DNA of 63,979 bases, counting the filler, from Octopus bimaculoides (taxonomy: Eukaryota): NCBI RefSeq assembly GCF_001194135.2. It is 5 parts of 4 records of this genome, joined end to end, with 100 filler letters (N's around TTAATTAATTAA, not from the genome) between each part and the next. Parts side by side here need not be neighbours in the genome. Positions count along the whole stretch, not along the records: positions 29,293 to 35,801 come from NC_068983.1; 4 more parts are not named here. One strand, 5' to 3'. Within the stretch, counting starts at the first letter, position 1; every line of letters begins with the position of its first letter. The notes under the pieces were generated by a model. That model saw only the letters and a list, made by a program, of their open reading frames with translations, searched no databases and was not told where the DNA came from. This document shows positions 3,913-39,110 of this stretch, one piece after another. The translations under genes and the position numbers were made by a program.

Positions 3913-4209
3913 GGCATATGGCATAGTGGTTAAGAGTGTGGGCTACTAACCCCAACATTCCGAGTTCGACTCCAAGCAGTGACCTGAGCAATAACAATAA
4001 TAATAATAATAGTAATAATAATAATAATAACAATAGCATTGAAAAATACTTTAGGAGTGAGAACCCAGGTTCGAAATTTCCCCAAGACACCTGAAGAAGG
4101 CTGGAGGGTATATCAGCTGAAATGTGTTAACAACAAATAAGATGAGGACAAATATCCGTCGAATGTAAATAATGTACAGAATTCCTCATCTCTTAAATAT
4201 AGAACTGTA
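3913..4209 (+). mobile_element. tRNA-headed SINE with hammerhead motif, copy 1
   Basis: A box tggcatagtggtt and B box gagttcgactcc, (AAT)n, body gaaaaatac...gaacccaggttcgaaatttcccc, hammerhead-like core, gatgagga/tcctcatc hairpin, tail tcttaaatatagaactgta; body also at 56405-56542 (-), tail also at 58644-58678. Confidence 0.85.
4086..4128 (+). ncRNA. Decayed minimal hammerhead ribozyme
   Basis: gacac-CTGAAGA-A-ggctg/gagggtatat/cagct-GAAA-t-gtgtt; stem III bases are deleted relative to the intact copy at 56450-56495. Confidence 0.65.
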
Positions 4210-4314
4210 CTTTACACAGTTGTTTACAAAAAAGTTTAAGTGACAGAAGACTCTTTTTTCCATTTGTATTTCATCCTTAGTAATGAAGGATCCATAATTT
4301 GAATTCAAATTTTG

Positions 4315-4590
4315 GCACAAGACTAGCAGTTTTGAGGAATGGGGCAAGTCAATCGCATCGACTCCAGTACTCAACTGGTACTTATTTTATTGACTCCAAA
4401 AGAACAAAAGGCAAAGTTGACCTCGGCAGCATTTGAACTCAGAATATAAAGACAGATGCTTCCCAACCACATGGTTTCTGGTTCAGTCTCACAGCATGGC
4501 ACCTTGGGCAAGTTTTTTTCTGCTATACCCTCTGGTTGACCAACCCTTTGTGGGTGGATTTGGTAGACGAAAGAATCCTGTAGCATACAT
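4315..4590. mobile_element. Adjacent SINE fragments: family B (-) then family A 5' part (+)
   Basis: actggtacttattttattgac...gcaaagttgacctcggc...tttgaactcagaa, followed by ccaaccacatgg...ccttgggcaagt...ggatttggtagac. Confidence 0.7.
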
Positions 4591-5034
4591 ACATACACAC
4601 ACACAAACATATGTGTATGTTTCTTTGTCTTGTAATCGCACCATAGCTGTAAACGAGCATCTTTGTCATACTAGTGGTGTAATTCATTTTCAATCTTTCA
4701 TGGAACCGTGTCCAATCATGGTAAAATGTTAGCTTACTTGGAAACAGTTGAGGGATGGTAACTTCCCTCAACAAGCATAGCAAAATGAACATTGAAACAA
4801 TGATGATGTTATGTCAATATTCTTAATGTTCTGTACTTGACAGAAATGGGAATACCCATACTCTGTGGATTATTCACACAAGAGTGGTTAGACCATGAAT
4901 GTTCCAGATTTGTTGCTATTACTGTTACTATTAACCTACCCAGTTTATGAAGTTTAACTGATAGATTTTTCAGCTGTTCTGAATGAGCCATGTAATCATT
5001 TGGATCACCTTGGCTGTCTGGTACTGAATCATCT

Positions 5035-5375
5035 CTGCTGGCCACAGCATTCACTCCATTCTCTTTGTGCTCTCGCCATTCTCCGCCACGTTGTTCCAAA
5101 CATTTTTGTTCAATCGTCTTCCTACTTGATTGGAGGTCTTCCAAGTGGCCTCTTCCGTTCAAGTGGGTACCACTCAACTACTATGTGGGTTCACCGATTG
5201 TCTGTGAACCTTGCAACATGATCAGCCCATCATAACTTTGTGTGGGGGTACTCTGTGACAACGTGCTTCACTCCAGTTCTATCCCTGATCTCCTCGTTCT
5301 GGATGGGATCTCTTAGCGAGATTCCCAACTTCGACCTTCCCGTAGTTCTCTGCAGAGAGTGCAGAGCTAAATAAT
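5035..5375 (-). mobile_element. RTE-clade LINE 3' ORF fragment
   Basis: Minus-strand ...QNEEIRDRTGVKHVVTEYPHTKL.WADHVARFTDNR.THIVVEWYPLERKRPLGRPP matches the RTE C-terminal WAGHVAR / W.P...KRP.GRP motifs. Confidence 0.8.
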
Positions 5376-5760
5376 AGGTTTTGTAACAGCAACTTAAACT
5401 TCTTAATTTAACTGGTATTAATTATTATTCATTTGTTTTTTTTTTCTTAATTTCATATTTGAAACAACTGATTAATTAGATACAATTGGTTTTATTATTA
5501 CTGTTCAGTAGTTTTATTTTTATAACGTGCTTTCACTTCACTACCAAGCGCAGCTCTGTGTGCCTTGGGTATGTGCTGTGGTTTGCTGTGATGGTCTTAT
5601 TGTTACTGTATTGAAAGTGTTTTGCGTAGAATGTGTGCAGTGCCCAGTAGTGCAATATTATTATTATTATTATTATTATTTTTTTAATATTTCTTTTTTT
5701 TTTTGCTTATTGTTATTTCGCATTTATGTATCTCATAAATTTTGTTTCTATTCGTTCCAG

Positions 5761-5842
5761 TGCAGAAATAAGTAGTCCACCCGGGCACCAGAACAGGCGG
5801 CTACAAATATTTTTGTTTATCTATTGTGTCGTAGTTACTGCT
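5761..5842 (+). CDS. ACER3: Alkaline ceramidase 3, internal exon (82 nt)
   Basis: ttccag acceptor, gtaagt donor; AEISSPPGHQNRRLQIFLFIYCVVVTA; phase joins the next exon. Confidence 0.75.
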
Positions 5843-5977
5843 GTAAGTAAAATCTATTACATATTTTGTCTTAAGATATTATACTGTATCGAAATCGGGA
5901 GGTTTCGTAGATTAATTGCATAGCTAATCTGAGGCAATCGAAGTTTTTCCCCCTTTATCGTATTACACTTGTAAATG

Positions 5978-6009
<32 letters not shown>

Positions 6010-6600
6010 CTCTTCCTCTCATGAAACGCATTATCGCCATTAATGCAAGGAAGATAACTTCCGAAGCTAAATTAATTTCATTACACGGATATTGGAGTTA
6101 TGTCCCTTGGAAAATTATTCTGTGACGGTAAGTTTACAGAATAAATTTGCAGAGAAGATTATGTTAAGATTCAAAGAGGCTGCATATAACCTTTGGTTTT
6201 TTAAAATTTCATTAATATTTCATAAACAATGTTTACACAACATTTCATTAATATTACTGAAATGAAACGAAATTTCATAAACAATGTTTAGCTTCTAACG
6301 TTTCATGGAGTTAGGCATATTCAGGGACATGTACAATTCTTGATGTTACTTGGTAGCTTCACCTGCTGCAGGACATTGCTACTGATTATAGAGATTGGTT
6401 CTTGTTTGTCTGTACTGTTTAATCCTGTTTTAACTATTCTGATCAATTTGACATTTTCATTATATGTTATGAGGCACCCCAATATCCCTGTCCAAAGTTC
6501 TATTGCTTCCTCCATATTCAGTGTTAATTTTTCTGATGTACCTACTCAAATTTTACTGAAACACTTTGCTTTCATCAGAAACTACTACTACTACTACTAC

Positions 6601-6643
<43 letters not shown>

Positions 6644-6675
6644 TATTATTATTATTATTTATTTATTTATTGCAG

Positions 6676-6711
6676 GTCTATTTGTCGATAAAGAACCCAG
6701 TCTTTCATGAA
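6676..6711 (+). CDS. ACER3: Alkaline ceramidase 3, internal exon (36 nt)
   Basis: tgcag/gtaagt; VYLSIKNPVFHE aligns with ACER3 VYLKVKEPIFHQ. Confidence 0.9.
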
Positions 6712-6899
6712 GTAAGTATATCTTCCTAATTCTAATTCTGTAGTTACCTGGTGCCAGGCACCTATGAACATAAGTGAATATGAAAAAAAAGCTAGGACAC
6801 AAAGCACACTCATTAATCTAGATACATTCAACAAATCGTCAGATTCAGTGGTGCCCCTGTTGTAACCAGAGAAGCAATTGCATTATAGGGTTAGATGAC

Positions 6900-7200
6900 A
6901 CCTATTCATGCCACCTATCACACCACAGATGCATTAATCCAGAAGAATCATATTAGGATAGCTAAGAAACCACATGATGTTGGCGAGTATATATTGTCGG
7001 GGTGGGCAGGAGGACAAATGAACACATGGTTCTTCCAGTTCTTACTGGACAGAAACTGACATTTCCCCATCATGTATAAATTGTATCTGGTGTTTTCATG
7101 CACCACATGTTTGATAATAGACTCTACCACCTGCTTGGTGATCACATTTATCAGCTTTCAGGGGTTGTCATTCATGATATTCAAGACCTATTAAATGGAC
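6900..7200 (+). mobile_element. Possible ancient CR1/L2-type reverse transcriptase remnant
   Basis: Broken frames give W..QFLLDR and IVSGV, like WI.SFL.DR.Q...SGVPQG; heavily decayed. Confidence 0.35.
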
Positions 7201-8236
7201 TCAAGTTTATCTTGTCCACATGACTCATTCCTTCACTGTCAAAGAACTCCAGCTCTGATCAAGAAGGACCTGGCCACATTTAAGAAGGTGATAATCTTCG
7301 AGCCTCTATGGTTGGTAGCTAGAGCTGTCAGCATGCCTTTTTCTTTTCTTTTTTGGAATGGAATCTACCCTATTTGTGCCATCGATATATCCAACAGAAA
7401 AACAAGAAAGTTAAAATTTTGCATTTGCTGCATAACATTACAGTAGCTAGATTTTCATTTATGGCTCACCAAATTCTCTTCACAAATACCTTATGTATTC
7501 TTCTGTATAGGATTATTATGAAGATTGTCATTGTTGTTGTTGAATAACTATAATTTGCTGCTTAACAAAGAGGAACTCGCTCTTACAGACAAGAAACTGT
7601 CAACAGAAAAACATTCTAATCGTCAACTTCAGACAAAAGCTTTCCATAATCTTAGTAAGCCTAGCCATTCATTTCAGACCTTCATTGTAATTATTGAATT
7701 TTTAAGTTGCCTAGTGTGTCACATTTTGTTCTACACTCTAAAATTATCATATATATACACATCCACATTTAGGTAAATATTGAACTCAATTAAAAAGAAT
7801 TCCTTTACATATTGAAGGTTTGCATGTTTAATGTGTTTGCATGTAAGAATGTTTTTTATATCATAAATAATATTTTACTAGTTATTAACCTACAATAATT
7901 TAAATTTCTCTTTTTATATTTCAGTTAAGCTTTGTCAAATATTACATCCTTCCACTAGTTTCATTATCCATCGATCTTTTTTACTTATCACCTCCCGCTT
8001 TCTTGTACATTTACTTTTTCCCTTCCATTTCCTCAATTTTGTTTATTCTTGCTCTTTTCTTGCACCCCCTAACTCTCTCTCTCTCTCTCTCTCTCATTTA
8101 TATGCGTGTACACACACACACATACACACACACACACACACACATTCAATGTGCTTTTGGTTTTCCTCTATTAGCAATACATGTTTATTCATAAACCAGT
8201 CAGCTATTTATAAAATACTTGTTATTTCATTTTCAG

Positions 8237-8292
8237 TTTGCATATGGTTTATTGGTAGTGAGTCTGGTGGTTTTTGCAATGAAAGTCATCAG
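8237..8292 (+). CDS. ACER3: Alkaline ceramidase 3, internal exon (56 nt)
   Basis: tttcag/gtaagt; FAYGLLVVSLVVFAMKVI(R), a transmembrane segment like VMYGMLVFTLV. Confidence 0.88.
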
Positions 8293-8326
8293 GTAAGTAA
8301 TCCTGCTGCTGCTAATAATAATAATA

Positions 8327-8362
<36 letters not shown>

Positions 8363-8869
8363 TTAATAATAAAGCTATAGGCACAAGGAGGGGTCTGAAT
8401 TTTTGGGGGATGGGTTAGTCGATTACATTGACTCCAGTGTTTAACTGGTATTTATTTTATCAACCTCGAGGTTGATAAAATACGTACGTACGTACATACA
8501 TGCATGCATGCATGCATACATACATACATGTTTTTATGTTAGCATTCTCAGTTGGCAATATATCCCATTGCTCTGCTTTTTACTTTCAATGACCAGTGGA
8601 ATAAAGAAAAAAATATCCCTTACTTGAAATATAAGTAAGGGTTAGCGATATTAGAGTCATCTGGCCATAGAATGCTGCCTCAAATAAGTTTCCGTCCACT
8701 CCATACCAGAATGAACAAAAAAAGAAATGTATAATCAGCAAATGAACAAAAATTTTAAACAAATGTTGTAACAACTTAAAATTCAAAATTAAATATTGCT
8801 CAAAGTTTTCATAACAGCCATGTATATCTATTTGCATATTTGTAATTATTTCTTTTCTATTGTTTACAG

Positions 8870-8971
8870 GAAATGTGAACACAATCTGATATTAGTTATA
8901 TCTGGAATGAGTATTTACTTATTTGGATTTCTATTGTGGAATATTGACAATAACTTTTGTCCACGAATTAG
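8870..8971 (+). CDS. ACER3: Alkaline ceramidase 3, internal exon (102 nt)
   Basis: ttacag/gttagt; KCEHNLILVISGMSIYLFGFLLWNIDNNFCPRI(R) contains the diagnostic GF..WNIDN.FC. Confidence 0.95.
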
Positions 8972-9601
8972 GTTAGTATTACTTATTAATTTCATTACTT
9001 ATTTGTTCTCTTTTCTGGTTTCTGTTCCTGAACAGTAGCCGTGATGGAGTGTTAATTTTTGGTGGATTATATTAACCTCCAATACCTTGCCTCTATATAT
9101 TTTATCAATCTCTGTTTATCAATTGGTTGAATTTGTCTCAAGTTATGTACCCTATTAGGGAATTATCTACCCTTAGTGAATTCCCTACAGGAAATTTGCA
9201 CCAATGCATACACACACGCACACACACACACAGTTGGGATTTTCTTTAGTTTCTATTCACCAAATTTCACTCAAAAGGCAGTGGGCATGCAAGGTTATAA
9301 GCGAAAGACAACTTGACTTAGATTCTGTGCTCTGGGATTAAACCTACAACTATATGGGTGCAAAGATAAACACACACTTACATATACATATATTCAGACA
9401 CACACACACACACACTTCTATGTACAGAAGGAGTTGGTTGGCTTAGAGCTATAGTAGAAGACTCTTAGCCAAGTTGCCATTCAATTGGACTGAACCAAAA
9501 AACCATGAAATTTTAACGCAAACTTCTTAACCATATTGCCCAGTATTTGATCATTGTAAACATTTACCTAAAATTTTCTTTTTTGGTTTGTTTTATTCCA
9601 G

Positions 9602-9703
9602 GAGTGTTCGTTGGAATCTTGGTACACTTGGCCCCATCAGCCAGTTGCATGCATGGTGGCATCTGTTGGCAGGTATTGGGACCTATTTAGCTATTATTTT
9701 CTG
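9602..9703 (+). CDS. ACER3: Alkaline ceramidase 3, internal exon (102 nt)
   Basis: ttccag/gtaagt; SVRWNLGTLGPISQLHAWWHLLAGIGTYLAIIF carries the CREST-family H.WWH zinc-binding motif. Confidence 0.96.
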
Positions 9704-11080
9704 GTAAGTCATTCAAAGCAATAAAATACAATTATTGTTGTTTATGCGATATAAAATTTGAAATTTCAAGAAATGGGAAATAAATTGTTTTTCTAACCAT
9801 GAAACTCAAAATAGAATATCTGTCACATTTACAGATGTGACTTCATGTCCCATGGGTAGCCTCACTAGTGGGAGGTCCGCTCCAGGTGACACTTTTAAAG
9901 GGGCAGCACTTTTCATTCTGTTGTAGGCTATAAGCCTACAACAGACTCTGTGAGTCCCAACGTCTGTAATTGTTATCTCTCCTTTTTTCACCTTATTTTA
10001 TACTGATATAATGGTTTCAAATTTTGTCACGGGGTCAGCCATTTTAGGGGAAAAGAGTTAGTTGATTGCATCAACTCTGGTACTTGACTGTTACTTTATT
10101 TTAATGATCCAGAAAAGATAAAAAGCAAAATTGAATCTGGTGGAATTTGAGCTTGAAACATAATGAGCCAGAACAAATGTCACTATGCATTTTGCTCAAT
10201 TTTGCTCACCACCTCATTTTATACTGTTATAATAACTTCTCATCATACTCATTTCTTCCAGTTCATGTATCCTACCAAACCAGTTGACATTTCATCTCCC
10301 TGAATCAAAGGGTTCTACCTAAAACAAGAGTCGCCAAAGGGGATCTGAGAGACCCCTAGGAGTCGATGAGGAATTACAGGGGGTCGATGATAGCCAAGGG
10401 GTTGAATGGGGGTCGGCATGTGAAAGACCATCTCACTCAGATGAACTGCTTGAAATGCTTAGTCAGCACCTTGAAACATGGGAAAACATGATAAATTTTC
10501 ACTACAGCATTTGAGACCTGATGTCGTAATCTGTATCACAATTGAAGATTGAGAGGCATGATTGAAGTGATGCAGACTGTCAAGTGTTGTTTGCTTATGG
10601 AAATGACAAGGCCTGCTAGGGGAGATAAGATATTAAATACATACCTCATAAATGTTTGGCCAGCATCAGTATCCAGTACGTATTTAAGATATGGTACATT
10701 TGGGTATTAAGATATTTTAAATTAGGAGGATGGTTGATGTGGAAGGAGAAGAGGCTAAAGGGGCTTGATGTGGAAGGAGAAATGGCTAAAGAGGGTCAAT
10801 GGTTGAACTTTCTGGATGGATTTCCATGCATGACCAACTGAGACTAATGGATATTATACCTTAAAACATTACACTTCCTTTCTTCATGGTTTAAAAGTTA
10901 TTCCAATGCATGAATTATTTCTATTATTTCTATGTGTTCAGTCCTTTGTAAATAAACCAATAAAGTTGTTTTGATTTTCTTCCTTAGACTTTATTTTAGT
11001 ATTGTTTCACTAAATAATGTATTTCACTTATGAAAACCATTTGAACATTCTATATAATATCGATTTGCTTATCATTACAG

Positions 11081-29696: not shown

Positions 29697-29988
29697 TTGC
29701 AGGGTATCTATGAAGTGAAATAACTTTGCCGTCTACATTCTTCCCTCTATAATTGCTGCATATACAACAGTATTAGCGCGATTTCTTCGGAGACATATTA
29801 ACCGGTTATACAGTCTGTGAGTCATTAGTCCGCGTATGTAAAAGCAAGTCACTGAGCATGCGTACATGTCATACGGGAGAGTTCCAATCAGGGGCGGATA
29901 AGTAACTTATCGGAACCACTTATAGGCATACGCAAATGAAATCTCTGAAAACAAGTTGTTTAGTTAATTGAGTAAGGGTACCTTCTCG

Positions 29989-30619
29989 ATGTCATCAATA
30001 ATGGGTACCCTTGGTAGGTGCGATTTGTGTATAGTCTCGTATACATCCAAACAACACAAAGAAAGTCATTTAAAGGGAAAGAAGCATCAAAAAAAATTTT
30101 CTGAAAGAGAACGTTTTTGCACATCTCTACCTATTCGGCAGGTAGAATCGCCAAGTAATGTACAGCCGGTACACGCAGCTTTGAGTAACATACCCCCATA
30201 TAATACCGAAGCCATTACAGAACCGACAAGATCACAAAATGTATCTATTAACGTGCAGACGACACAGACGTGCAAAGAAGATGAGAACATTGTTTCGCTA
30301 CGGCCCACGTCTTTAGATCGTAACGAATTTATACGCATTTATAAAGATGAAGACGACGAGATAATAGGATATAAATGCACTCTTTGTTCTAAAAAACTTC
30401 AATGTGCTAGTGCTGTAACTTCTCATTTGCAAAGTAGCGCACACTGCAAAAATGTCTCCGAACAACCATCAAAACTTTATAATTTACCTCCTATCGTACA
30501 CCACTGTGAAGACCCGATCGATGAAGCTTATTGCTTGACAGATTCAATTCCGAGAGGTTACCAAGTCGAATTGTTTGAAAAATCTTATTGTTACGACAGC
30601 ATTATATTTTTACCCACAG
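29989..30619 (+). CDS. First coding exon: two JAZ/U1-type C2H2 fingers plus start of a Dicer/RIG-I/FANCM-type SF2 helicase
   Basis: 210 open codons; CDLC-x12-H-x5-H and CTLC-x12-H-x5-H; PRGYQVELFEKSYCYDSIIFLPTG equals Q motif plus the first half of motif I; GT donor (ACAG/gtttga) inside the Gly codon. Confidence 0.75.
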
Positions 30620-30907
30620 GTTTGATAGATATTTTCTGCTTTTTTAATATATTTTAAAAATAATTCCCGAAATATTGTAAATTTGCTCATTTTCAAAGGG
30701 TAAAAAAACACGAACAGAAAAAAAAAAACTTACGAACATTGGATTTCAGCAATAAGAATCGACCCCCCCCCCAAAAAAAAACTTGAAAAAAACCATAAGA
30801 TTCAAGACAAAATTTACTCTCACTTAGTGTTTTTTTAGGACTAAAGCAATCATCGATTCTAGGATTAGTTAAATTTTCATTTTAGTATGTTACTAAATCG
30901 AAAGTAA

Positions 30908-32599
30908 GTGTCCCACCCACGTCTTTGGATATTTCAGAAAAATGGATATTTTTTAANNNNNNNNNNNNNNNNNNNNNNNNNNNNNNNNNNNNNNNNNNNN
31001 NNNNNNNNNNNNNNNNNNNNNNNNNNNNNNNNNNNNNNNNNNNNNNNNNNNNNNNNNNNNNNNNNNNNNNNNNNNNNNNNNNNNNNNNNNNNNNNNNNNN
31101 NNNNNNNNNNNNNNNNNNNNNNNNNNNNNNNNNNNNNNNNNNNNNNNNNNNNNNNNNNNNNNNNNNNNNNNNNNNNNNNNNNNNNNNNNNNNNNNNNNNN
31201 NNNNNNNNNNNNNNNNNNNNNNNNNNNNNNNNNNNNNNNNNNNNNNNNNNNNNNNNNNNNNNNNNNNNNNNNNNNNNNNNNNNNNNNNNNNNNNNNNNNN
31301 NNNNNNNNNNNNNNNNNNNNNNNNNNNNNNNNNNNNNNNNNNNNNNNNNNNNNNNNNNNNNNNNNNNNNNNNNNNNNNNNNNNNNNNNNNNNNNNNNNNN
31401 NNNNNNNNNNNNNNNNNNNNNNNNNNNNNNNNNNNNNNNNNNNNNNNNNNNNNNNNNNNNNNNNNNNNNNNNNNNNNNNNNNNNNNNNNNNNNNNNNNNN
31501 NNNNNNNNNNNNNNNNNNNNNNNNNNNNNNNNNNNNNNNNNNNNNNNNNNNNNNNNNNNNNNNNNNNNNNNNNNNNNNNNNNNNNNNNNNNNNNNNNNNN
31601 NNNNNNNNNNNNNNNNNNNNNNNNNNNNNNNNNNNNNNNNNNNNNNNNNNNNNNNNNNNNNNAAAAATGGAGGATATTTTAATATTTTTTAATGAAATTT
31701 TCTACGAATATGTGCTATACCATGTAGATTCCGAATAGACAAAACTTTTGGGGTAAAATGTTTTAGGAGGGGTGGGTGGGGAATTTCCGGAAATTCACCG
31801 GCGCCCACTTCAATTCGTCTTAACTTTCAAGAAAATAGATATTTTTTAATGAAATTTTCTACAAATATACCTCGGACTATGTAGATTCCGAGAACATATG
31901 AATTTTTTGGGAAAACAGTTGGGCGTTACTTTTGAGGACCGTTCCCCCACTTGGGGGGTGTTTTGGAACAAGTCGTCCATATTAGTTTCATTTTCTCCGT
32001 TTTTTGCGTTTGTGCATCCGTAGATTTCTAGTCTCTCTCTCTCTCTCTCACACACACATATATATGTAATTAAAAAGTTCAAACAGGGAATTATTCTTTT
32101 CAATGTCTTTTTTTTAGAAACGTTTAGACCTTTAGCTGGTATTTTTAGCATTAGTTTTCTGGTGACAGCTTCATTGCTTGCTTCTTCAGTAGAAATCTAC
32201 GGATGCACAAACGCACAAAACGGAGAAAATGAAACTAACATGGACGACTTATTCCGAAACTCCCCTGAGTGGGAAACGGTCCTCAAAAGTAACCCCCAAT
32301 TGTTTCCCCCTTCAAAATCCCTACGTTCTTGGAATCTACATAGTCCGAGGTATATTTGTAGAAAGTTTCATTAAAAAATATCTATCTTCTTGAAAGTTAA
32401 GACGAATTGAAGTGGACGCCGGTGAATTTCCCGAAATTCCTCACCCTCCTAAAACATTTTCCCCCAAAAGTTTTGTGTATTCGGAATCTACATGAGATAA
32501 CACATTCGTAGAAAATTTCATTAAAAAATATCCATTTTTCTGAAAGTTATGATCATCCAAAGTCGGTGAGGAAGGGGTGCAGAAGTCCGTAGTTATGCC
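30908..32599. mobile_element. Foldback element with long subrepeated TIRs (Merlin-like)
   Basis: About 31663-32030 is the reverse complement of about 32190-32550, with internal subrepeats of about 170 bp; 160-bp spacer; left arm interrupted by a gap. Confidence 0.75.
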
Positions 32600-32798
32600 C
32601 GATTTTTGTATAATCGATCCATCGTAGGATCTACTAAGTTTCGTGTGAATTCCCGTGTGTAGAATACAGATACGCTAAAGTTTTCAAACAATTCAAAATA
32701 ATAATAATAATAGTAGTAGTAAAAAAAAAAAGTTACGAGGTGTTTGTTATATGGCGTGCTCAGAGTAGAATTCCGTGTTTATATAAATATCTGGCAAA

Positions 32799-32868
32799 GG
32801 TAAAGAATACCACCCGTTTTCGGCGATTGGGGTTACTCCGAAAACGGGTGGTGTGCGTATTCTTTACC
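32799..32868. repeat. Short GG-terminated hairpin / mini-MITE
   Basis: ggtaaagaatac-cacccgttttcgg pairs with ccgaaaacgggtg...gtattctttacc, with a 6-nt indel. Confidence 0.6.
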
Positions 32869-33074
32869 GACTATATCAGAATTTAATATGAAAAAATAAA
32901 TTTGGTGGGCTCGTACACGTGACCGCCCAAAGTCTGGGGGGTAAAACCCTGTAGTTATGCCCACGTACATACTAACACGTCACGTATATCTACAAAATGA
33001 AACTTGAAATTTCGAAGAAATTAGTGATATGTGTCGTATGTATGTGAATGTTCTTGTTTTCTTGTCAAATCAAA

Positions 33075-33238
33075 GGTAATTTTTCAGATTAACACCCGCA
33101 TGATCTTCACTAGGGTTTTAGGGTTTGGGTTAGGGAATTCCGTCCCTAACCCTAACCCTAAAACTTTAACCCTGACCCTAAAACCCTAACTCTAACACCC
33201 TAGTGAAAATCGTGCGGGTGTTAATCTGAAAAATTACC
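33075..33238. mobile_element. Merlin-type MITE containing inverted telomere-like repeats
   Basis: 42-bp TIRs starting GG; exact 8-bp TSD aaatcaaa (33067-33074 and 33239-33246); interior TTAGGG-like then CCCTAA-like units. Confidence 0.85.
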
Positions 33239-33460
33239 AAATCAAATTCCGATATAATCGTAATTTACATACTCTGAAAAGTATTTGTAGAAGGTAATCT
33301 TTCAATATAAGGTGTTTAAAAAAATAAATAAAAATTAACGGGGAAATAAGGGGAGATAAATAAGGGAACTTACTGTTAAATAACGTAGACATTGGCTATA
33401 GCCACCGAAAAATGAACAAAAGTCTTTTTCTTTGGTACAGAATTCCTCCATAATAAACTA

Positions 33461-33590
33461 GTGTAAATATGAAACAAATAAATTGTCTGACGTTCCAAAC
33501 TGACGTCGTAATTTTCTTTTTATCCGCATCCATATATTCTGCACATTTTGCGTATGGACGTCGTTATTTGTCGGATAATAAAATTTCATT
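33461..33590 (-). mobile_element. Merlin/IS1595-family transposase remnant
   Basis: FYYPTNNDVHTQNVQNIWMRIKRKLRRQFGTSDNLFVSYL matches the Merlin motif VHTQ.IE..W...K......G......YL. Confidence 0.75.
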
Positions 33591-35801
33591 AAAAAATTAC
33601 TGATGTTATGAAGAAACAAAGCTAACGTGTGTGAATTTCCCGAAGCTCCTTCCCCCTCCACAGTGTGTAAAAAAAAAATGTGTATGAAACGAATATGAAA
33701 ACAAAAATGCTCGCAAATCAACCTGGAGGTGGGAAGAGGACTTTTTGAAAATTCACAAGGTCTTTGAGGAAAATAGATATCTTTTGATGAAATTTTATAT
33801 AAATACCTTTCAAAGAGCATACATTATGGTTATAAAGAAATTCGTGGGGAAAATCTTTTCCGATGACATGGGGAGAGGTCTTTCGAAGAGAAAGAGGTTA
33901 TTCATAAATTATTTTTTTGCTTGAGGGTAATGGAAAAAAGTTTGAAAAACGGTGGAACCACATGCCTTGCCACCCATGAAAAAAGGGTGCGCAACAATCT
34001 CTACAGCTCACTGAAAATGAACGGCTGAAACAAGTGAAACAGCATGTTTCACGTACCTTTTGTATATGTTGGGCTTGTTTTTTCACTTTAAAGGTAAACG
34101 ATTCTCATAGAAGCAAACACGATATTAAATAATTCTCCGTCATACGTCTATTAAGAACTTTAACATACTGCCAAAATGGGATTTCATCCGCGTGCGTCTA
34201 TGTGTAGGTAAGGGTGTGTGTGCGCTGGGTGGTGAGGGGTGTGTGGATCAAATTTGGAGTTTTTCATATAAAGTTTGAAATTATTTAATTTTTTGTTTTT
34301 TGCATATTCAGAATCTCCGTCATCGAAAACCAAAGAATCCGCTGAGAAAAAAATAAAAAATTCCGAAAGCTTGTTTTTTTTGAGGGAGGAGTGTGACTGA
34401 CTGTTGTCCAGCTCCACCTGAAAAAAGAACTTAGATTCATTTTTTTCTTGTTTGAGTAATAGAAAAAGGTTTTTAAAAAGATCCCATGTATCATGATGAG
34501 AGAGAAAAATTCATAAATATGGTGTTGAATATGGTTTCACTATAGAAAAAAGTTAAGGCTGATTTAGCTGTTGTTTTTAGCATATTCACGACCGTCTGAT
34601 ATCATCCACATTTGTTTAATATTTTCGGTTAATTACTACAAGTTTGCTGAGCCACCAGTTAGCAAGTTAACAGCCTAATGGGTGTAGGAAGATCTGTATT
34701 GAATGTTTTACAGTATAAGCCTAGTTGGGAGTAAGAAGAATGTTTTAAAGTGTAAAAAATGCACCAACGTACCTTTTAGGAGTTATTGGTGAGCAACATC
34801 AAGAACCGGGATACATTCTTCCATATCATCAGGAACATGAGTATAGTCTTGCAGCCTCCAAAAAAAACTAATGAAGTCGCTGGGTTGGCTAGGTCTCATT
34901 CCAAGTCAAACAATACACCTTTTCAGGCTTCCCCCATAAACACTCAGTATTTTGAGTCTGAATAGAAAGGTATGCCGTTTGAAAGGTATTTATATAAAAC
35001 TAGCAAACGTATGGTTTAAGTTGCTTTGAACTACTGAGAAGGATAATGCACAGCAATCTATGTTTCCGATTAACCTAGGAATGCAAAACCAAATTGAAGG
35101 CTGGCTATTGTTGAGGTCGTTGCACTTTTTGATGCAAAGTAGAGCTACTGAAGTGTTTTGGGAGTAGATTACAGATAACGACAATAAAATATAGTGGTTT
35201 TACATGAAAGTGAAATTGCTTGTCAAAAACAGCCACATAAATGGTGTAAGGAAGACGTTAAAACTTCCACTCTGCGATTTTATTCAACAGTAAAGGGAAC
35301 TATTTTTTTTGGAAAGAAGTATGATTGGTATGTTAAAAAATGGTAGTGTACGACCACTCTGAAATTGACTTCAGGTAACGATGAATGAAGACATGAAGAG
35401 TTTGACTTCAGTTAAGGAATACTGCTTTGCATCTTAAGCAGTTCACAGTTGAAAGATGTTGCATTGTAAGGCAGACAAACAATAAATAAAAAAAAAAAAC
35501 GTGAAAACAACAAAAAAATATTCTGTAATGAAAATATAGGACCATACAGATTAAAACAGTATGGAAAACAGTCGAAACAACTAAATAAACAAAATGCTTT
35601 CACTTTACAAAATACACACCAATACACATAAAGAAATATAGAAAGTAATAATACACAATTACAACATAAATAAATAATAGAATAATTGTGAAAACCACTA
35701 GAAAATATTCTCTAATGCCAATATACAACCATATACATTAAAAAAGTATAGAAGACCCTACATACAAAAAAACTATGTACATACAATCATCATCATCATC
35801 A

Positions 35802-37270: not shown

Positions 37271-38880
37271 TCATCATCACCACCACCACCACCACCACCA
37301 CCACCACCANNNNNNNNNNNNNNNNNNNNNNNNNNNNNNNNNNNNNNNNNNNNNNNNNNNNNNNNNNNNNNNNNNNNNNNNNNNNNNNNNNNNNNNNNNN
37401 NNNNNNNNNNNNNNNNNNNNNNNNNNNNNNNNNNNNNNNNNNNNNNNNNNNNNNNNNNNNNNNNNNNNNNNNNNNNNNNNNNNNNNNNNNNNNNNNNNNN
37501 NNNNNNNNNNNNNNNNNNNNNNNNNNNNNNNNNNNNNNNNNNNNNNNNNNNNNNNNNNNNNNNNNNNNNNNNNNNNNNNNNNNNNNNNNNNNNNNNNNNN
37601 NNNNNNNNNNNNNNNNNNNNNNNNNNNNNNNNNNNNNNNNNNNNNNNNNNNNNNNNNNNNNNNNNNNNNNNNNNNNNNNNNNNNNNNNNNNNNNNNNNNN
37701 NNNNNNNNNNNNNNNNNNNNNNNNNNNNNNNNNNNNNNNNNNNNNNNNNNNNNNNNNNNNNNNNNNNNNNNNNNNNNNNNNNNNNNNNNNNNNNNNNNNN
37801 NNNNNNNNNNNNNNNNNNNNNNNNNNNNNNNNNNNNNNNNNNNNNNNNNNNNNNNNNNNNNNNNNNNNNNNNNNNNNNNNNNNNNNNNNNNNNNNNNNNN
37901 NNNNNNNNNNNNNNNNNNNNNNNNNNNNNNNNNNNNNNNNNNNNNNNNNNNNNNNNNNNNNNNNNNNNNNNNNNNNNNNNNNNNNNNNNNNNNNNNNNNN
38001 NNNNNNNNNNNNNNNNNNNNNNNNNNNNNNNNNNNNNNNNNNNNNNNNNNNNNNNNNNNNNNNNNNNNNNNNNNNNNNNNNNNNNNNNNNNNNNNNNNNN
38101 NNNNNNNNNNNNCTCCCTCCCTCCCTCCTTCTCGCCTTCACTCTCTCTCTCCCTGTCTGCATATGTGTGTGTGCGTGTCCGTGTGTGCGTATCTGTGTGT
38201 GCGTGCGTGCGTGTATGTGTGTGTGTGTGTGCTTTATCCCACTAGCTTCTTTGATTCTGTGCTAGTTTGTCGCTTTGTCTCTCTGTTGAATGTCTATTAT
38301 TCAGTAATGACTGCTTTTGTGATCTTTTTCGTTGGGTATGTGTTTCTAGATTTCTGGCTGTCGTTATTTTCCTCATCATGATGAGGATGATGGCAGTGAT
38401 GTTTTTTTTGTGGCGATGGTGGTCGTGGCGATAGTGGTGATGACGGTGGTAGTGGTGGTGGTAGCGTGGATTATGATGGTGATGCCGGTGATGGTGGTGA
38501 TTGTGATGACGATGTTGATGACAATGATGATGATGATGATGATGATGATGATGCGGTGACGTACGAGAAGTAAGGTTATGGTCATGGTAGTGGTAATGAT
38601 GATGATGTTCATGATGATGATGATGATGATGATGATTACGATAGCAGTAATGACGATAGTGGTTGTGGTGATAATGGTGGTGGTGGTAGGGGGAAGATGA
38701 TTATGACGACGACGACGACGATGATGATGATGACGATGATGATGATGATGATGATGATGATGACGATGATGATGATGATGATGGCGCTGGTATTAGTGGT
38801 GATGAGGACTGTGACGACGACGACAGTGACGACGCCGACGATGAGTACGCACGACGATGGAGATGGTAATAATGACGATG
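37130..38880. repeat. Compound (CAT/CAC/GAT/GAC)n trinucleotide arrays around a gap
   Basis: Direct inspection; source of the poly-I/T/M/V pseudo-ORFs. Confidence 0.9.
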
Positions 38881-39110
38881 ATTTGCCGCATTATTTGACG
38901 TGACAAGAACCCCACAGTTTACGTTTTCTTGTTTTGCTGGAGACGCACTCAATTCAATTGGTAAATAAAATTGCTTATTTTGTATTCTATAGATAACATG
39001 AAGACGGGAAACAAAACCAGCAACTATTTATGTGGTTATTCTGAAGAGACATCGCTTTCGGTACCTATTTTGTTTAAGGCATTAAAATAACCTTCCAATT
39101 TTGTTGGAAG

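Follow-up and report, generated by a model that had tools for sequence, protein, structure and literature searches.

A two-finger exon of Octopus bimaculoides begins a split-annotated gene for a predicted Dicer/RLR-type helicase of a family found in molluscs, hemichordates and a coral

Gene structure at the locus

The subject of this analysis is a coding exon on the plus strand of Octopus bimaculoides DNA (29989-30619) that encodes two zinc fingers followed by the beginning of a helicase related to Dicer and to the RIG-I-like receptors (RLRs). Positions are those of the window, the whole stretch of 63,979 nucleotides (filler included) under study, of which the part from NC_068983.1 (29293-35801) was analysed as one piece. 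This piece is 100% identical to O. bimaculoides CM046603.1 and corresponds to positions 3954-10462 of locus L001 (CM046603.1:92764148-92813731), the locus of the annotated helicase P0166. Window positions 29989-30621 translate into 211 stop-free amino acids (aa), and an in-frame TAA (29965-29967) lies shortly 5' of the ATG. Translation confirmed what had been read in the first-pass annotation, namely, two C-x2-C-x12-H-x5-H fingers, the sequence PRGYQVELFE, the LPTG of motif I and a splice donor at that point, all at the positions given in Table 1. The Cys and His residues of finger 1 are kept in O. vulgaris and Argonauta; finger 2 stands 79 aa ahead of motif I; and the Q motif aligns with TPRPYQVELLE of the ancestral Dicer helicase and GYQLE of LGP2. 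Pfam zf-met matches two stretches of the exon with 28.7 bits (gathering cut-off, 21.2), and at least one finger pattern appeared in just 221 of 200,000 composition-preserving shuffles. The window exon is a true first exon, in which two zf-met fingers are joined to the start of a Dicer/RIG-I-like helicase.

The earlier annotation had further predicted that the coding sequence would continue with xGKT. A scan of all frames detected no GxGKT-encoding exon inside the piece, and tblastn of P0166 and its O. vulgaris orthologue P0165 on L001 placed the continuation in the second of four exons, beyond a long intron. The acceptor of exon 2, with a polypyrimidine tract and AG (…ttttacag), reads …ttgctcttttacag/GA ACT GGT AAA ACT C. 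The last G of exon 1 and the first two bases of exon 2 form a Gly codon, followed in the correct phase by the T-G-K-T of Walker A, so that the predicted continuation was recovered; across the same junction, the orthologues read FLPTGTGKTLISIM. A 10-N assembly gap (L001 16208-16217) interrupts exon 2 and is expected to stand for about 45 nucleotides (nt) of stop-free, LISIMVISHMLKRNP-like coding sequence. With the exons placed in this way, 29989-30619 is shown to be the first coding exon of a predicted four-exon gene with a product of about 720-730 aa.

Fused proteins were identified in other cephalopods. An exhaustive phmmer search with exon 1 gave 241 matches at E<=0.001; a word-index protein search with the 211-aa exon returned nothing, though the 77%-identical P0165 is in the same database, and a negative result of such a search with short or low-complexity queries is not to be taken as absence. 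The best phmmer match was the Argonauta hians 'dicer-like protein 1' (P0001, 787 aa), in which zf-met, JAZ, ResIII/DEAD and Helicase_C domains are recognised. With P0001 as the query, O. vulgaris 'dicer 2-1' (P0165, 732 aa) and O. bimaculoides P0166 (499 aa) were retrieved. P0165 begins at the same Met as exon 1 (MSSTMGTLGRCDLC), is 77% identical to the whole of exon 1 over its residues 1-225 and runs on through FLPTGTGKTLISIM…. In the gap-free Argonauta locus (L002), the gene consists of the same four exons, and intron 1 likewise splits the motif I Gly codon in phase 1 (ACAG/GTtagat … ttttcag/GT ACT GGT), and the protein is 41% identical to its octopus counterpart. Two further proteins, P0167 and P0282, are fused open reading frames (ORFs) of 1115-1130 aa on Logan contigs of 3.7-5.5 kb (49 contigs in the case of P0282), and their 90% cluster includes a Sepia pharaonis fragment. 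Logan being an assembly of public sequencing runs (of a type not stated) and both ORFs being uninterrupted, we take these contigs for cuttlefish transcripts; read so, they independently point to one fused mRNA, and the O. vulgaris and Argonauta gene models are fused as well.

The O. bimaculoides annotation divides this gene in two. Gene calls on GCA_001194135.2 include, at this locus, a 239-aa 'zf-met' product and the truncated 499-aa helicase LOC128246994 (P0166), a model that has an NCBI accession. The 239-aa call (L001 4650-9061; window 29989-34400) is rebuilt exactly from exon 1 and 34312-34400 with GT-AG junctions, and the tail encoded by the latter, which has no counterpart in the fused orthologue sequences, is probably a prediction artefact. 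The P0166 model starts with an exon inside intron 1 that is spliced straight to the post-gap half of exon 2; its peptide, MVVYDHSEIDF, is absent from all orthologues, and the exon probably represents an artefact or else a minor alternative start. Since the gene is split just where the 10-N gap interrupts exon 2, we read both gene models as artefacts of this gap. That the annotation is correct, with exon 1 belonging to a separate 239-aa finger protein that ends at 34312-34400 and the downstream helicase being independent, is hard to credit despite the two calls and the clean rebuild, because a finger protein standing by itself would stop after a Q motif and one half of Walker A, functionless alone, exon 2 completes GTGKT in phase, the 499-aa model is without both the Q motif and motif I and opens with a peptide missing from all orthologues, the O. 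vulgaris, Argonauta and cuttlefish sequences are all fused, and the break falls on the gap. The 239-aa finger protein and LOC128246994 need merging.

Table 1. Coordinates of the finger-helicase gene, its annotated exons and the sequence of intron 1
Feature	Window	L001	Strand	Remarks
Coding exon 1 of the zinc-finger/duplex-RNA-activated helicase gene	29989-30619	4650-5280	+	ATG at 29989; 210 codons and first base of Gly codon; 30619 at about 92,769,427 on CM046603.1
Zinc finger 1, CDLCIVSYTSKQHKESHLKGKKH	30019-30087 (aa 11-33)		+	C-x2-C-x12-H-x5-H; zf-met best stretch, aa 10-33
Zinc finger 2, CTLCSKKLQCASAVTSHLQSSAH	30376-30444 (aa 130-152)		+	C-x2-C-x12-H-x5-H; second zf-met stretch; helicase-proximal
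Conserved linker, finger 2 to helicase, ending LYNLPPIVHHCEDPIDEAYCLTDSI	30445-30549		+	Family consensus APxRxLPP…LTxxxPRxYQ
Q motif PRGYQVELFE	30550-30579 (aa 188-197)		+	Y, Q and L invariant in 24-sequence family alignment
Start of motif I (Walker A), L-P-T and first base of Gly codon	30610-30619		+	LPTG, aa 208-211; exon end …SIIFLPTG
Intron 1 GT donor, phase 1	30620-30621		+	ACAG/GTTTGA, splits Gly codon
Intron 1 (partial)	30620-35801	to 16192	+	Holds repeats and assembly gap
N run (assembly gap) in intron 1	30957-31662			Read from the sequence
Terminal exon of 239-aa model (…FLPT/ESPSSKT…ECD*)	34312-34400		+	Exact rebuild of the 239-aa product; probable artefact
First exon of LOC128246994/P0166, MVVYDHSEIDF	35340-35374		+	tblastn of P0166, 100% at 35340-35375; then AG/gtaacg
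Exon 2		16193-16313	+	About 10.9 kb downstream, beyond the piece; start at about 92,780,340 on CM046603.1
Exon 3		21846-21970	+	Orthologue mapping
Exon 4		38338-39584	+	Orthologue mapping

Some other features of the piece are recorded here. Exon 1 gives a sub-threshold match to Pfam DAAD (AID/APOBEC-like deaminase; aa 17-184, E 0.011, 16 bits vs a cut-off of 25), which is noteworthy given an RNA-editing animal and was rejected as probable noise from Cys/His composition. Intron 1 contains a large foldback element resembling a miniature inverted-repeat transposable element (31682-32552), with nested inverted repeats whose arms are 136 nt (93%), 76 nt (93%) and 62 nt (92%), surrounding a (CT)n(CA)n microsatellite near 32036-32062; partial copies of the foldback lie at 33580-33660 and 33745-33810. 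A hairpin at 33075-33238 has 57-nt arms that are 91% complementary and a telomere-like TTAGGG/CCCTAA interior, in which Tandem Repeats Finder reports a repeat at 33144-33202 with the consensus CCCTAACCCTAAAA. Rfam, tRNA and tandem-repeat scans of the piece gave nothing but this CCCTAA-like repeat. The piece ends in A-rich, low-complexity sequence (35470-35801) finishing in (TCA)n, and in the chromosome a 3.8-kb N gap (L001 10463-14307) follows directly.

Protein architecture and family position

From the N-terminus, the protein consists of a zf-met finger, a disordered linker, finger 2, a conserved linker of about 35 aa and a complete superfamily 2 (SF2) helicase of the Dicer/RLR type, and the octopus chain ends about 43 aa past motif VI. 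P0165 and P0166 carry the helicase motifs DEVHH, TASP, TSVAEEGVD and QMRGRAR, and in an alignment of 24 family sequences P-R-x-Y-Q-x-E-L, LPTGTGKT, DE[AV]HH, TASP, TSVAEEGID and QMRGRAR are invariant or nearly so. The Q motif and motifs I, II, III, V and VI are all intact, as in duplex-RNA-activated SF2 helicases.

Pfam searches with octopus, cuttlefish, coral and hemichordate members at E<=1 detected only zf-met/JAZ-class fingers, ResIII/DEAD and Helicase_C. At this threshold, RNase III (PF00636, PF14622) was not matched in five members; DUF283, platform-PAZ and the partner-binding Hel2i signature of Dicer (PF20930) were likewise not found, whereas the comparison Dicers carry PF20930 and PF03368. 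There was no match to the RIG-I C-terminal domain (PF11648), for which the tail past motif VI is too short; none to CARD or death-fold domains, the N-terminus being made up of the zf-met fingers and the disordered linker; none to ERCC4, (HhH)2 or the Hef insert domain PF21210; and none to the canonical double-stranded RNA-binding domain (dsRBD; PF00035, dsrm), in whose place the zf-met fingers stand. The architecture is non-canonical, as was initially proposed: the accessory domains of Dicer, RLRs and FANCM/Hef are all missing at this cut-off.

In a phmmer search of the PDB with the Argonauta protein, the highest score was that of the ancestral Dicer helicase AncD1D2 (120 bits), followed by LGP2 (105), DCL1 (104), MDA5 (103), RIG-I (100), human Dicer (87), Dcr-2 (74), Hef (73), DRH-1 (72) and FANCM (50). 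The first-pass annotation had listed Dicer, RIG-I/MDA5 and FANCM/Hef together as kin on account of the Q motif and motif I; the Dicer/RLR part of that assignment stands, whereas FANCM/Hef is the most distant of the three.

An AlphaFold2 model was made of O. vulgaris P0165 (mean predicted local distance difference test score [pLDDT], 78.7; predicted template modelling score, 0.69). In this model, both fingers adopt a beta-beta-alpha fold (pLDDT 84-88 for finger 1 and about 90 for finger 2), the linker between them (residues 43-125) is disordered, and finger 2 with the following linker (block-mean pLDDT 88-95) is confidently placed beside the helicase. An all-helical, Hel2i-like insertion (residues about 433-580) lies between the RecA lobes, and the chain terminates with a long, pincer-like helix (702-728). 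In a Foldseek comparison with the PDB, some 565 columns of the model aligned with RIG-I, MDA5, LGP2 and the ancestral Dicer helicase at E values between 1e-23 and 1e-20, with template modelling (TM) scores of 0.47-0.59 in 49 of the 50 matches listed; mouse RIG-I (3tbk) scored lower, at 0.38/0.50. As predicted for the O. vulgaris orthologue, the protein contains both a Hel2i insertion and a pincer helix. It is, judging from the model and the motifs, a helicase of the Dicer/RLR type (the duplex-RNA-activated class), with an unusual N-terminal putative RNA-binding module and nothing else.

The octopus protein has relatives in several animal groups: cephalopods (Octopus, two species; Argonauta; Sepia), bivalves (Mytilus, two species; Pinctada; Argopecten; Mercenaria; Dreissena; Potamilus; Crassostrea), gastropods (Haliotis, two species; Aplysia; Plakobranchus; Babylonia; Bulinus), hemichordates (Glandiceps and Ptychodera) and a scleractinian coral (Orbicella). 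Most are named 'uncharacterized' in the databases, and the others 'dicer-like' or 'RIG-I-like'. The number of fingers ranges from 1-2 (Bulinus, the octopods, and Orbicella as modelled) to 11-13 (Argopecten, Mercenaria, Haliotis). One finger is located 73-81 aa ahead of motif I in 16 of the 19 tabulated proteins, from coral to octopus; the exceptions are two cuttlefish proteins, whose proximal finger has an x11 spacing and was missed by the pattern, and an unnamed Joint Genome Institute (JGI) protein with a distance of 85 aa. In the 17 members in which motif VI was found, bar Dreissena, the chain ends 39-56 aa past it; Dreissena alone has a 520-aa tail.

To place the family, helicase cores from 54 sequences (465 columns) were compared in a neighbour-joining tree with 200 bootstraps and archaeal Hef as the root. 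The family is monophyletic (bootstrap 95). Its coral and hemichordate members branch outside the molluscs, which form a clade resolved into cephalopods, gastropods and bivalves. Neither the clade of RLRs (100) nor that of metazoan Dicers (100) includes the family. It joins an Ectocarpus helicase, the dsRBD-helicases similar to HelF of Dictyostelium discoideum (P0360; Q86L44, DDB_G0294407; 837 aa), and fusions of a helicase with an RNA-dependent RNA polymerase (RdRP) at bootstraps of 65-68, and this assemblage groups with the Dicers against the RLRs (83). Profile comparison agrees on the nearest relatives. A HelF-like hidden Markov model (HMM) was the best for 18 of 18 family members (228-323 bits), ahead of the Dicer (177-241), helicase-RdRP (169-240), RLR (134-195) and Hef (126-182) profiles; conversely, the family HMM scored the helicase-RdRP fusions at 336-340 bits, HelF-like proteins at 295-312, AncD1D2 at 250, RLRs at 170-212, natural animal and fungal Dicers at 157-203, and Hef at 157-175.

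These comparisons show the O. bimaculoides protein to be, by the sequence of its helicase, an octopod member of a conserved clade that is present in molluscs, hemichordates and a scleractinian coral, is distinct from Dicer, RLRs and Hef/FANCM, and appears nearest to the HelF-like helicases of Dictyostelium and the helicase-RdRP fusions. What is new is a helicase of the duplex-RNA-activated class with a novel putative recognition module in a clade of its own; the sequences themselves were already public. Grouping with ordinary Dicer, RLR or FANCM proteins, the outcome that would have spoken against the initial proposal, was not observed. The architecture is not specific to the octopus: bivalves, gastropods, hemichordates and a coral have it too, mostly with a larger number of fingers. 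The link to RNA editing suggested at that stage finds no support in the distribution of a family that is older and broader than coleoid recoding and in which octopods have among the fewest fingers. We also considered that the family could be what was left of Dicer-2 in molluscs once its nuclease half had been lost; this is unlikely because the family occurs in coral and hemichordates, tracks the species tree and lies outside the Dicer clade, in a tree that contains neither arthropod nor cnidarian Dicer-2.

Proposed function and alternatives

All things considered, the best explanation of the data is a fused finger-helicase gene whose product serves as a stand-alone cofactor or regulator of RNA interference (RNAi) or of the surveillance of double-stranded RNA (dsRNA), and we regard this explanation as moderately probable. 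What is established for JAZ/ZFa fingers and for the helicases of RLRs and Dicer allows a mode of action to be proposed. The fingers would hold the protein on A-form duplex RNA, replacing the dsRBD of HelF or the C-terminal domain of RLRs, and the Hel1-Hel2i-Hel2 ring would clamp the duplex and hydrolyse ATP in a dsRNA-dependent manner, with the ATP being used for translocation or remodelling rather than for cleavage or CARD signalling. Because the protein has no catalytic (nuclease) or signalling output of its own, it would depend on partners, assisting or regulating either RNAi-type processing of dsRNA or dsRNA surveillance, and could promote or restrain silencing. The closest functional analogies, as we infer them, would be HelF, a natural restrainer of RNAi, and LGP2. 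The role of dsRNA sensor or RNAi helicase proposed in the first-pass annotation is plausible.

Molluscs offer a setting for such a protein. They have been reported to be without Dicer-2, and the DECH box of their Dicer-1 has diverged (PMC11114477); some snail Dicers have no Hel1, and snails have no RdRPs (bioRxiv 10.64898/2026.07.10.737666). Given these losses of Dicer-2 and Hel1 and the divergence of the DECH box, a helicase acting in trans is attractive. An obligate RdRP partner was considered and is unlikely as a general rule, since gastropods possess the family and yet are reported to be RdRP-less (bioRxiv 10.64898/2026.07.10.737666).

Several points weigh against the cofactor explanation or parts of it. 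The assembly gap hides about 15 codons of exon 2 before …RRPVLFIVDKV, so the intactness of the O. bimaculoides gene is only partly shown. On exon 1, Pfam zf-C2H2_jaz, the dsRNA-binding subtype, reaches 16.4 bits, which is below its cut-off of 22.6, and zf-met/U1-type fingers occur also in spliceosomal and ribosome-biogenesis proteins; for both reasons, dsRNA binding by the octopus fingers is not proven. The fingers had been assigned to the JAZ/ZNF346/U1-matrin class; in O. bimaculoides they pass zf-met but not the JAZ model, which is passed in Argonauta (23.9 bits), a Sepia-like protein (26.1), Orbicella (26.7), Glandiceps (29.7), and Haliotis and Argopecten (about 129-130). The tree was built by neighbour joining on near-saturated distances, without arthropod Dicer-2 or DRH-1/3 and with mostly unnamed RLR representatives, and the deep nodes that connect the family to HelF and to the helicase-RdRP fusions reach just 65-68% bootstrap. 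Finally, a literature search found no description of the finger-helicase family and no citation of its accessions.

Among the alternatives, an RLR-like cytosolic sensor of viral dsRNA that activates antiviral transcription via some adaptor, as RIG-I and MDA5 do via MAVS, comes closest, and we consider it unlikely. In its favour, the structures matched best are those of RIG-I, MDA5 and LGP2 in complex with dsRNA, every ATPase motif is intact, and NCBI calls the Mytilus and Glandiceps members 'RIG-I-like'; however, no signalling module is visible in the family protein, with neither CARD nor death-fold nor RIG-I C-terminal domain matched by Pfam at E<=1 and a chain that ends so soon after motif VI, and the family lies outside the RLR clade (bootstrap 100), with the RLR profile scoring lowest but one.

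A role in nuclear RNA processing, such as the remodelling of snRNA or pre-mRNA duplexes, is less probable still. It would suit the U1/matrin-type fingers, a kind that typifies factors of the spliceosome and of ribosome biogenesis; the closest matches of the fingers among solved structures, the 60S biogenesis factors ZNF622/REI1; the matches of family members to SF3a60_Prp9_C; and the naming of HelF as a nuclear protein in the title of a 2006 paper by Popova et al. (cited in PMC2175303). Against this, the ZNF622/REI1 and SF3a60_Prp9_C matches are weak (E 0.14-0.5, or under the Pfam cut-off), and the helicase is of the dsRNA-clamping Hel2i type, not of the DEAH or Ski2 type. A FANCM/Hef-type DNA-repair or branch-point translocase with DNA-binding fingers, which would share the Q motif and motif I signature and could explain the JGI label 'ERCC4-related helicase' on one member, can be set aside as very improbable, given the PDB phmmer scores of Hef and FANCM (73 and 50 bits vs 100-120 for Dicer/RLRs), the Hef profile scores (126-182 vs 228-323 bits for HelF-like), the lack of ERCC4, HhH2 and PF21210, and the position of Hef as the outgroup of the tree.

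A bolder form of the cofactor explanation, which we put forward as a doubtful but consequential possibility, is that the family is a third ancient animal lineage of Dicer/RLR-type dsRNA helicases, a zinc-finger counterpart of the amoebozoan HelF that was inherited from the cnidarian-bilaterian ancestor, has persisted in corals, hemichordates and molluscs and acts as a stand-alone dsRNA motor. If so, it may supply the ATP-dependent dsRNA handling that mollusc Dicer-1 has apparently lost; alternatively, it may shield endogenous duplex RNA, including the ADAR substrates of cephalopods, from silencing.

The family is relevant to the evolution of RNAi and innate immunity. Dicer and the RLRs are the two recognised animal branches of dsRNA-activated helicases, and much of invertebrate antiviral biology is read through them. 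The finger-helicases would add a conserved and apparently catalytically intact third branch, with zinc fingers, rather than a C-terminal domain, dsRBD or PAZ, as the predicted RNA-recognition module. They have been hidden under the names 'uncharacterized', 'dicer-like' and 'RIG-I-like', and they would escape any survey in which RNase III is the mark of Dicer or the C-terminal domain that of RLRs; Formaggioni et al., for example, annotated DICER by the RNase III domain (PMC11114477). The molluscs in which the family occurs are the very animals for which an absence of Dicer-2 and a divergent Dicer-1 DECH box have been reported (PMC11114477), and a trans-acting helicase there would alter models of RNAi and dsRNA sensing for lophotrochozoans.

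Comparison with known systems

With JAZ/ZNF346 and dsRBP-ZFa, the family shares the C-x2-C-x12-H-x5-H spacing, repeated fingers, long linkers and recognition by zf-met; those proteins differ in having no enzymatic domain, and the JAZ score of the O. bimaculoides fingers is sub-threshold.

AncD1D2 (PDB 9mw6), the best single PDB sequence match, aligns with the family from the Q motif to motif VI; in the tree, the family sides with the Dicers against the RLRs (83), and members bear the database names 'dicer-like protein 1' and 'dicer 2-1'. Unlike Dicer, the family proteins lack the partner-binding signature, DUF283, platform-PAZ, RNase IIIa/b and dsRBD; their motif II is DE[AV]HH, as opposed to the DECH of Dicer; and they fall outside the metazoan Dicer clade, with the Dicer profile scoring below the HelF-like one in 18 of 18 members (arthropod Dicer-2 being unsampled).

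LGP2 is a CARD-less regulator. LGP2 (DHX58) and the family proteins are alike in the absence of CARDs, and the RLRs in general share with the family the Hel1-Hel2i-Hel2-pincer architecture, as predicted for the latter, and are its top Foldseek matches. The family differs from RLRs in having N-terminal C2H2-type fingers instead of the zinc-binding domain PF11648, which recognises RNA ends, and in its position outside the RLR clade.

Dictyostelium RdRPs carry a Dicer-like helicase. The helicase-RdRP fusions (P0178-P0182) are the top non-family match of the family profile and cluster with the family in the tree, but contain PH_met_RdRP and RdRP domains and no fingers. Two of the clusters of these fusions have 598 and 776 members. 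On contig ctg25952 of ENA ERZ25067556 (L003 6001-9981), an intronless ORF of 1326 aa combines a Dicer-type helicase with PH_met_RdRP and RdRP, and it adjoins a second RdRP gene, the product of which is called in several pieces.

HelF consists of a dsRBD and a helicase in a protein of 837 aa (PMC4894637), and its deletion results in hypersensitivity to RNAi, showing that HelF restrains RNAi (PMC2175303). It has a canonical dsRBD, compared with the 1-13 zf-met/JAZ fingers of the family; HelF is amoebozoan and the family animal, the node joining them has a bootstrap of 65%, and the restraining role is known for Dictyostelium only. HelF is the closest characterised relative: the HelF-like profile is the best outgroup profile for every member, the two are grouped in the neighbour-joining tree, and in both, which are without a nuclease, an N-terminal dsRNA-binding module (predicted, in the case of the family) is connected by a linker to a Dicer-type SF2 helicase that is followed by a short tail.

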